Shown: positions 60,201 through 63,200 of the stretch, piece by piece
Layout of the letters: every line of letters begins with the position of its first letter
How positions within the stretch are numbered: the first letter of the stretch is position 1
Assembly: GCF_963853765.1 (NCBI RefSeq)
Contig: NC_088855.1
Span: 33,604,001 to 33,668,000, forward strand
Direction of reading: 5' to 3'
DNA length: 64,000 nt
DNA from: Magallana gigas
Taxonomy: Eukaryota
Notes under the pieces: model-generated
Told to the model about the DNA's origin: nothing
Databases searched by the model: none
Seen by the model: the letters and a program-made list of their open reading frames with translations, nothing else
Position numbers and translations under genes: made by a program

Positions 60201-63200
60201 TGTATTTTTCCCAGGGAGTTTTGTGCAGAACACTGCAAGGTCATGGCCATTGGGTGAACATTCTGGCACTGAGCACTGACTACGTGATGAGGACTGGCGC
60301 CTTTGATCCAGCTAATGCTAATATAGTTCCTCAGGACTCCCAGGAATCGGGTAAGAAACTGTGTGGCTATAACAGTCAGTGGATAGATAAACAGAAGTTT
60401 ATCAATAGTTTTCTGCCAAGCATAAATTCAGTTAATTTAGGTGAAAACAGTTGGTCAACTTGAGAAAAAAATTGGTTCTAAAGTTTATTAGAGACATTTT
60501 ACACCCTTGTATGCATATTGATGATACAGCCTCATAATTCTAAGGAATATTATTATCACATAGGGAAAAAAAGATCAGTTATATCATTGTATGCACACAA
60601 AGTTTACATGTCACAGTCTACCGTTATATCCTTTCTGATGTCTGGAGCCAAATTTCCTGTACTTTTACAGAAAGAAAACCCAGTTCTCCATACTGTGGCA
60701 ATGTCAATTAGATCTTCATCAAAAATGTAGAATCGGGCGGTGCTGTGACCCCCCACAATCAGGTGGTGGTCCTGACTGATCCCCGGGCGGGTCCTGTAAT
60801 AGTGTATCACTGCCCGGTCATAGTGACCTTCACCCTTATGATTCTCAATAGTGGTGACAATATCCATCTGGGGGCTGTGACAAGTGCCCAGTTCCCTGAC
60901 TAAAACATTGTATTGTATGTCTCCAAATCTCCTCTCGGGGATGGAGCTCGGAATGAATTTTAATTTGAAGATAAAAGAGGACACTTGGTCATTCCAGAGG
61001 AAATGATCGCAGTAGTACTGTTGAAACGTCACTGTACCACGCATAGGATTGATTCTGTAGCATTCATCTGCCTTTAGTTGGCCGTTTTTGTCCTCATGCC
61101 AGATAACATATTTGGTCTTTGTTAGTTCATCATAAGAAATTTTGAAAAGAGCAGATTTTCTTGATCTTATTTCATATATGGACAGGAGTTTCACAAAATG
61201 CACCCTTTGTGTTTCATTGTACATATTTATATCAAAAACAGGGTGGTTAAAAAATATGCTAACGTTGTCAAAATACCTAGCCTCATTGTAGTCTTCCTCA
61301 AACATGCTTTTGGGGTGATTAAAACGAATGCTTTCATTTGCTCCTCTTTCGAACAATGTAAGGACAAAGACAGACACTGACCCCATTAATATAAAAATCA
61401 TTCCACTTAAGAACATGAATTTAAGAGCATACTTCCACCCTTTTCTCAGGCTTTGTAAAGCATCAATGCCCTTTTTGCTAAAATATCTTATAGAAAGAAG
61501 GCTTATTCGAACCACTATCCCGTAAAGCAGTGCCGAGGCCTTGATGATCTGGAATAAGCTAACAGCTTCCTCTCGACACATTGCTATGCGGACCCCTATG
61601 ATCAACTGTGGAATATCCTCAATCCAGAGGAAAAAACATGAAACAATGTCCGGATTAATCCAGGCAGGCTCAAAGAAAAGTTCCTTACCAATGTTTGCTA
61701 TTTCAAATACAATTGCAAAGGTGCCAACAATAGCAAAAAATAACGAAGAATAGACAATGGAACTTTCAATTGGTCCATACACAAGTCCTGGCTTTATGCC
61801 ATGAATGTCCCTGAAAAAAAGCCAGTCCACAAGGAAATCCAAAAAGTCCAGTCCAAAAGTCATCAAGAATAGGAAGAGTTTGAAGGAAAACCATTTCTGG
61901 GCTCGAACACAGCATGGAATTAGATCAGTCAGAGTGGACAGTTCCTCGTAATGAGATCTGGAACTTCCAGGTCTGGATTCAATCTTCCGGGGCTCAGTCA
62001 GTTCCAAGTCTGTTCCACTTTTGTCTTCCTTAGTGCTCTTCTCATCCTCTGTAGTTGCCAGTGGGTTTACACTAAAATCATCATAGAAAAAGGAAAAGAA
62101 AACCTGTTAAATGCCTATTTAGAAAAAATAATATTACTTTTAATGATATTATTTCATGTTGATTAAGATTACTAGTAAATTGATCAATTGATCAAGTTTC
62201 AGGACAGTAAAAATGTGCAGAAATCATGTGATTTCAATTTATAATTTAAAGATCTGTAAGAAATCTAAGGTTTAAAGGTAATATTATAATGGATTTACTC
62301 ACAAAAACATGTTGAACCCAGACAGATAAGGTATAAAATCAAGGTAATTTGATAAATCCAAGGTGTGAATTAGAGTTAACACAATATCAATTTTTATGGA
62401 TTATTTCATGAAGGGCATTAGCATTGCAATCAGCAGGGCAACAAGGATTTCAGATCTGAATTTTTCTTGTACGTTGATATAAATTTGTTGTAGAACAGTG
62501 TTGATAATCCATACTCATTCCTCAGTTGCAAAGAATTCCAAGACTGTCGAATTCGAACAACTCTCCAGTTGCTTTTTATTTTAACTGCATGTAAATGTCA
62601 TTGAACACAAGGTTAATAGCTTTGGGTATTTATCCATGGGAATTTGTTAAGGTCATAAATTTTGAAAACTAAAGTAATTTTGAAAAAACTATCGAAGAAA
62701 TAATAATATAAAATTGTCAACATTACAGAATAAATTCTAAAAATAAACATACCTCCCACCAGTATCTGAAGATTTTCTTTTCAAAATTAGTCTTGAATGT
62801 TCCATTTCTTTTTAGTATAAAGAAAGGGAAACTATGAAGCAAGTGTTGTGTTTACTGCCGTTTAGAATCTTTGGGATTTATTCATGTGGCCATGTAGGGC
62901 CTACTTGCTTTAGAGGTCCAACTAGCAAATATCTTGTATTGTACATTGGATCGGAATAATAGGGTTATGTGCATTATACATATGAAATAAGGTTACATGC
63001 AAGCTGTGCAGTGGAAATCTAAATAGCCATACATGTATAACATTAAAGCAATATTATATATAAACCTGTTCACAATTTTTCAATTTTAAATTAAAGGATC
63101 AGTTTAACTGGATAGTAAATACAACTTAGATTTTTGTCTCAAATATGTTTTTTTTGGCCTGAGAAATATATGTTTTGTATACCAGTATATTTGACAAAGG

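Follow-up and report, generated by a model that had tools for sequence, protein, structure and literature searches.

The window analysed here, a 64,000-nucleotide stretch of the Magallana gigas genome, carries near its right-hand end a minus-strand gene that lies inside an intron of the plus-strand gene NLE1. This nested gene is functional, spliced, protein coding, and expressed. Its product belongs to the Pfam family PF27623 (DUF8357) and combines a group of transmembrane (TM) helices with a predicted extracellular domain at the C terminus. We consider it probable that the first four helices (TM1 to TM4) share true common ancestry with the N-terminal domain of the XK-related (XKR) proteins, among them XKR8 and XKR9. 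The gene and the adjacent exon of its host are laid out as follows.

60215..60350, plus strand: NLE1 exon directly upstream of the host intron, defined by RNA contigs and their loose ends, 254 nt from the nested stop codon
62753..62805, minus strand: coding exon 1, with the ATG at 62805, 17 codons and 2 bases, and the donor GT after 62753; supported by an RNA joint
62072..62752, minus strand: intron of 681 nt with GT..AG ends, within which lie an alternative exon and a block that is conserved at the orthologous locus
62415..62584, minus strand: alternative exon, joined as 62584^62753 in RNA
60604..62071, minus strand: coding exon 2, residues 18-506 and the stop codon at 60604-60606

The open reading frame listing of the window contains a minus-strand frame of 467 amino acids at 60604..62007. 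Joining 62805-62753 to 62071-60604 gives a coding sequence of 1521 nt in two exons, encoding 506 amino acids, with the splice donor AG/GTATGT and the acceptor TTTTAG/. Public RNA data covering 60100-63100 include a contig from run X1 that contains the joint 62071^62753. This joint skips 681 nt and has CT..AC ends, which correspond to GT..AG on the minus strand, indicating that the transcript must be spliced from that strand. Reading frame, splice signals, and RNA joint together bear out the complete two-exon, 506-residue antisense gene proposed in the initial annotation. The N terminus encoded by exon 1 carries a basic-serine motif that is also present at the N terminus of the paralogue P0003. 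A tblastn search of the window with the nested protein found no second copy.

The intron itself is partly conserved and partly transcribed. The joint 62584^62753 is immediately followed by an in-frame TAA, which rules out translation of the protein from the ATG at 62805 in this isoform. The block 62296-62533 shares 75% identity with the orthologous locus in another oyster and overlaps the stop-bearing exon, within an intronic region of note at 62162-62584. Contig depth in run X4 is 14-28 at 62221-62422 versus ~5-9 over the coding exon. An Rfam scan of 60300-64000 returned no match, and a pattern scan of the conserved intronic block found no box C/D elements. One X1 contig is continuous from 60321 to 61487: it begins within the NLE1 exon (60321-60350), crosses the 254-nt spacer, and reaches the nested coding region. 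It represents either a nested-gene 3' untranslated region that overlaps the NLE1 exon in antisense or an NLE1 intron that was retained, and the minus strand has a candidate AATAAA at 60489-60484. In two stranded poly-A runs, only 11 and 20 of the reads sampled cover the region, too few to judge co-expression of the nested gene with NLE1; most of these reads are in NLE1 orientation and cross the nested-gene intron as pre-mRNA would.

The host exons, on the plus strand, translate into WD40 repeats and an NLE domain (PF08154; 31.8 bits, cut-off 23.4), which identifies the host as a Notchless/NLE1 homologue. The exon upstream of 60215-60350 ends at 57445. The next NLE1 exon, whose sequence was read from RNA loose ends, is not within the window, so that the host intron spans 60351 to beyond 64000 and encloses the whole nested gene. 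Nesting on the opposite strand of an NLE1 intron, as initially described, is confirmed by these exons and by the RNA evidence for 60215-60350. Further, a 3.3-kb contig of another oyster (L003) contains an orthologue with 82% protein identity, and the same NLE1 exon lies antisense just downstream of it, indicating that the nesting is conserved. Across 488 aligned codons, nonsynonymous divergence (dN) is 0.115 and synonymous divergence (dS) is 1.77, giving a dN/dS of ~0.065, with equal constraint in the membrane part and the C-terminal domain. A decaying retrocopy or chance intronic frame, transcribed only within NLE1 pre-mRNA, would account for the few, mostly NLE1-oriented stranded reads and for the stop codon brought in by the alternative exon. 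It would not account for a GT..AG joint on the minus strand in RNA contigs, for purifying constraint over 488 codons at a saturated dS, or for the integrity of every family motif and cysteine. We find this explanation scarcely credible; the RNA joint and the dN/dS refute it for practical purposes.

Membership in DUF8357 follows from the homologues of the protein. Eight proteins found by word search (E 2.7e-267 to 6e-21) all carry a precomputed PF27623 assignment, which is named DUF8357 in two genome look-ups, and the window protein can be aligned with them over its entire length, with every invariant motif in common. When 1.84 billion representatives (50% identity) were searched with a family profile, 291 proteins scored E<=1e-3, of which 202 scored E<=1e-10. 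Profile positions about 20-452 are covered in most of these matches, indicating that the two-part architecture is the norm of the family. Members occur in bivalves (Crassostrea, Saccostrea, Argopecten, Pecten, Mytilus, Dreissena, Ruditapes, and Mya), gastropods (Haliotis, Candidula, and Batillaria), the nemertean Lineus, the annelid Paralvinella, and the monogenean flatworm Cichlidogyrus. All named members are labelled "uncharacterized", with P0193, discussed below, as the sole exception. The family is therefore already catalogued as DUF8357, uncharacterized and spiralian-wide, which the initial annotation had overlooked. Literature searches for PF27623 and DUF8357 found no paper in the library covered, and we came across no account of the family or of an ectodomain joined to a single XKR repeat.

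Other genomes show the gene in different settings. A Saccostrea echinata paralogue (L001) is intronless, with a single 1530-nt exon beside a SNARE gene, and an Argopecten irradians paralogue (L002, CM084265.1) is nested antisense in an intron of CCDC93. On this basis, the family seems to disperse as intron-poor copies that often settle in the introns of other genes. Architecture variants also exist: P0056 (Pecten maximus XP_033756636.1, 836 aa) has ~400 additional C-terminal residues and the NCBI name 'mucin-5AC-like', and P0079 and P0099 are extended by 150-200 aa at the N terminus. DUF7139 matched one member (E 3.5e-4) with no recurrence and was not used.

The window protein has five hydrophobic segments. 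The following parts of the protein can be placed on the gene, with conservation counted over 64 family members.

61480..61890, minus strand: predicted XKR-N-domain-like four-helix membrane bundle, residues 79-215, comprising TM1, the GLVYGP outer loop, TM2, TM3, the CREE outer loop, and TM4
61825..61839, minus strand: TM1 acidic pair D96-x3-D100, then W101; D100 conserved in 60/64, D96 in 42/64
61603..61626, minus strand: TM3 motif W167-I-E169-D170-I-P172-Q173-L174; P in 61/64, D/E in 60/64
61354..61476, minus strand: basic amphipathic, predicted cytosolic juxtamembrane helix followed by TM5, residues 217-257; mean K+R of the loop 4.7
60607..61353, minus strand: predicted C-terminal ectodomain of ~250 aa, mostly beta, with 3 sequons and 5 conserved cysteines

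The joined coding sequence contains the five TM segments, three sequons, five C-terminal cysteines, and sixth cysteine in the TM3-TM4 loop that had been reported at first reading. The sequons (N-x-S/T) are at N263, N287, and N303, the cysteines at 355, 372, 415, 486, and 504, with C183 in the TM3-TM4 loop, and the motifs quoted earlier fall at residues 91-101, 167-174, 183-186, and 217-235. Positively charged residues are distributed as expected for a cytosolic N terminus and an extracellular C terminus: the mean K+R is 7.4 in the proposed cytosolic segments (before TM1, TM2-TM3, and TM4-TM5), of which the TM4-TM5 linker alone has 4.7, versus 1.6 in the two proposed outer loops. Sequons average 4.1 in the C-terminal domain and ~0 elsewhere. 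Each of the five ectodomain cysteines is kept in 56-62 of 64 members, as is C183 at the outer end of TM3. Across the family, these distributions of charge, sequons, and cysteines predict that the C-terminal domain is extracellular, extending to DUF8357 as a whole the topology first proposed for the single protein, with the N terminus inside and a glycosylated ectodomain outside. The six conserved cysteines would be compatible with three disulfides, and one of these bonds may link the ectodomain to the bundle. Three charged positions predicted to lie within the bilayer are nearly invariant, namely, D100, D/E170, and K195 (60, 60, and 61 of 64 members, respectively). A Cys-Cys pair at residues 71-72 (61912-61907, minus strand), on the predicted cytosolic side just before TM1, is also found in several oyster and mussel paralogues (CCVRV and CCPWV) and is a candidate palmitoylation site.

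The whole-protein model (488 aa) has a predicted local distance difference test score (pLDDT) of 70, and the model of the TM region only, folded with 64 sequences, reaches a pLDDT of 89.5 and a predicted template modelling score of 0.84. Short strands in the GLVYGP loop of the TM-only model join the first strands that follow TM5, which suggests that the ectodomain is tightly coupled to the bundle. The whole-protein model gives the ectodomain about 12 strands. Foldseek searches with this model return scattered laminin-G or lectin-like jelly-roll hits of low probability for the ectodomain (best E 0.025), and no Pfam family recurs there among the scanned members; no fold or family could be assigned to it from the whole-protein model.

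Several lines of sequence evidence point from TM1-TM5 to the Pfam XK-related family, PF09815. This family was matched by 8 of 131 members at E<1, and P0004 is a ninth match (9 of 139 members in all); the next families were matched by three members, among 92 sub-threshold families. The best match is P0148 (20.7 bits, E 2.3e-4), with residues 79-148 on positions 121-190 of the hidden Markov model (HMM). Similarly, residues 90-190 of P0023 (13.2 bits) and residues 140-238 of P0004 (8.9 bits) both align with HMM positions 122-220. These three of the nine matches were located, and all three share a start column equivalent to window residue 156/157, at the start of TM3 and 12 residues upstream of the TM3 motif (HMM position 121-122); two end at residue 253, in TM5. 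The shared start column indicates a single register that lays TM3-TM4-TM5 on the middle of the XK model, the same region that was initially aligned by eye. Further, the UniProt automatic name of P0193 is "XK-related protein"; this 223-aa split gene model from Mytilus edulis is 96% identical to P0004 residues 1-209, which is exactly TM1-TM4. An Atlas feature search with the membrane part yields XK-related as the only named family among the matches listed (a mollusc cluster, 0.76, taken as a lead only), and the same search with the whole protein is blank. A word search with the TM-only profile found family members only, with no short XKR-annotated intermediates.

Structural comparison may point in the same direction. 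In their structure-search lists, XKR8 and XKR9 rank first among natural membrane proteins and have the highest sequence identities, and both matches run through the XKR N-terminal domain only. The alignment begins with model residue 5 on XKR8 residue 7 and, provided that TM1 is ungapped, would place model D24/D28 on XKR8 D26/D30. Elsewhere, whole-model structure searches (VIA) are dominated by generic three- and four-helix bundles, with nothing decisive, and Foldseek and Atlas shape searches with the whole 488-aa model give nothing with E<=0.001 or a template modelling score >0.25. Hits of the TM-only model in Foldseek and Atlas, to taste receptors and G-protein-coupled receptors (E at least 0.3) and to a bacterial hypothetical protein (template modelling score 0.48), were judged non-specific.

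XKR proteins are characterized by acidic residues that are strongly conserved on TM1 and TM3 of their N-terminal domain (Straub et al., PMC8298096), and D26, D30, K134, E137, E141, and R183 are essential in XKR8 (Sakuragi et al., PMC8500837). The window protein carries this acidic hallmark, with D96/D100 at the same i, i+4 spacing in TM1 and with E169/D170 followed by P172/Q173 in TM3. From the alignment start points, we propose D96/D100 as the counterparts of XKR8 D26/D30; from the Pfam register, we propose E169-D170-I-P172-Q173-L174 as the counterpart of XKR8 E141-T-A-P-Q145-L. The XKR8 string used for the initial alignment agrees with the numbering of E141, Q145, Q155, R158, and Q163 in PMC8500837. 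The claim that TM1-TM4 resembles the first XKR repeat therefore gains support from the single-register Pfam matches, the N-domain matches to the XKR8 and XKR9 structures, the name of P0193, and a language-model hint, all of them sub-threshold.

A number of results weigh against the XKR relationship or against carrying XKR function over to DUF8357. Membership by Pfam is not reached, with a best score of 20.7 bits against a gathering cut-off of 24.8 bits for PF09815; the window protein itself has no Pfam match at E<=10, in a model set searched without PF27623. Searches of PDB sequences by phmmer and hmmsearch, whether run with the protein or with the full-length or TM profile, give chance-level hits and no XKR protein at E<=10. 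Foldseek of the TM-only model finds no XKR among the best 50 hits, and generic soluble helical bundles outrank XKR structurally. The PF09815 matches among related members are not independent of one another, no single line is significant alone, and every homology line falls below formal thresholds. Plausible counterparts exist for only 3 of the 6 essential XKR8 residues, with none for K134, E137, or R183 in the register of the initial annotation. The two repeats of XK-related proteins are not present; the window protein has five membrane helices and one short amphipathic helix, consistent with the earlier proposal of a first repeat followed by a fifth helix. Finally, we know of no proven scramblase activity for most XKR proteins.

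That no sequence method reaches a curated threshold favours a reading in which TM1-TM4 is an unrelated, generic up-down helical bundle whose acidic and proline motifs are shared with XKR proteins by chance or convergence. The protein would then be a spiralian-specific receptor or adhesion-type glycoprotein in which the helices serve only as an anchor and function resides in the ectodomain. Yet the nine members that match XK-related do so in one register and every other family is matched by three or fewer, the best natural membrane proteins by structure and identity are XKR8 and XKR9 over the N-domain only, and an anchor would not keep the in-bilayer charges at D100, D/E170, and K195 invariant; we regard the generic bundle as unlikely. 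The presence of counterparts for only half of the XKR8 scrambling residues bears instead on what a true relative would do. Such a protein might be a non-scramblase, with a buried acidic cluster that binds a divalent cation or conducts ions, or a membrane partner that binds to or regulates another lipid-handling protein, as XK pairs with VPS13A. None of the observations discriminates between such a protein and a scramblase. Against the ion-binding version, no bound ion was seen in XKR9 (PMC8298096), and we hold a non-scramblase relative of this kind to be rather unlikely.

The boldest alternative takes DUF8357 as a single-repeat XKR protein, either a survivor from before the duplication or the product of secondary halving, that keeps the N-domain path for head groups and pairs up to form a two-repeat-like scramblase switched from outside the cell by its own ectodomain and restricted to Spiralia. 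We consider this quite improbable. If true, it would describe a Spiralia-restricted lipid scramblase gated by an extracellular ligand, versus the intracellular caspase and kinase switching known for XKR proteins. The reading that we lean towards, as somewhat probable, is that of a DUF8357 member with an XKR-N-repeat-related bundle, TM5, and an ectodomain, in which the membrane module handles lipid head groups or a cation beneath an ectodomain cap.

Under this favoured reading, the N-terminal tail of ~80 aa would be disordered and cytosolic. TM1-TM4 would form a bundle remotely related to the XKR N-terminal repeat, keeping the intramembrane acidic pair D96/D100 in TM1 and the E-D-x-P-Q kink motif in TM3. 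The ~7-residue connection between TM2 and TM3 leaves no room for the half-inserted helix IH1, which the bundle would lack. A basic amphipathic helix would follow, then TM5 running from inside to outside, leading to a glycosylated, disulfide-bonded, beta-rich ectodomain that packs on the outer loops GLVYGP and CREE. In XKR8, alpha1, alpha2, alpha4, and alpha5 form the walls of a hydrophilic path for lipid head groups (PMC8500837). Since these helices all lie in the N-terminal domain, the DUF8357 membrane module would most likely handle phospholipid head groups, or else a cation bound by its acidic cluster. In the first case the activity would be scramblase-like, and the fused ectodomain may serve as a built-in extracellular cap, acting in cis as a regulatory or ligand-binding element.

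The two-repeat fold of XKR proteins has been described as novel. A widespread animal family with the N-repeat only would be a natural minimal construct for asking whether the N-domain alone, or its dimer, is enough for scrambling, and would show the XKR fold as it was before its duplication or became afterwards. The extracellular domain fused to it hints at control exerted from the cell exterior, in contrast to the caspase or kinase control of vertebrate proteins. The analysis also offers a testable functional hypothesis for a domain of unknown function found in hundreds of proteins from oysters, mussels, scallops, abalone, annelids, nemerteans, and parasitic flatworms.

Elsewhere in the window, three plus-strand exons at 46323-47617 match eukaryotic carbonic anhydrase (PF00194, E 4e-13 to 1.5e-17). 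A 643-aa open frame in the same direction at 47598-49526 is of low complexity, rich in Ser, Pro, Lys, and His, and has no Pfam match; together, 46323-49526 may encode a long-tailed carbonic anhydrase, as in shell-matrix proteins. A run of 184 N at 39432-39615 marks an assembly gap or a masked stretch.

Among known systems, the closest comparison is with XKR8 and XKR9 (PF09815; PDB 7DCE and 7P14/7P16), which are apoptotic phospholipid scramblases. Like these proteins, the window protein is predicted to have a cytosolic N terminus, and it shares with them the D-x3-D of TM1 and the E-x2-P-Q on the third membrane-spanning helix. The XKR fold consists of two related repeats, each with four membrane-spanning helices and a half-inserted helix (PMC8298096), whereas the window protein has one repeat plus one helix and neither IH1 nor IH2. 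It also differs at the C terminus, where the cytosolic regulatory tail that carries the caspase or kinase switch of scramblase members is replaced by 250 residues that are glycosylated, cysteine bearing, and extracellular by the positive-inside rule. Basigin and neuroplastin, the single-pass immunoglobulin (Ig) partners of XKR8, contribute, next to an XKR-type bundle, one helix that carries a glycosylated extracellular domain, as TM5 and the ectodomain would do in cis. The ectodomain, at ~250 aa, is not Ig-like by any search, unlike these partners, and the basigin helix docks on alpha9 of the XKR8 C-terminal domain (PMC8500837), which has no counterpart in the window protein. The analogy drawn in the initial annotation is weakened accordingly: the concept of an own ectodomain carried on a helix survives as functional speculation, and the XKR8 domain that receives basigin is absent. 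Caenorhabditis elegans CED-8 and other invertebrate XK-family proteins, which are full two-repeat XKR proteins, would belong to the same superfamily as the window protein if the homology holds.

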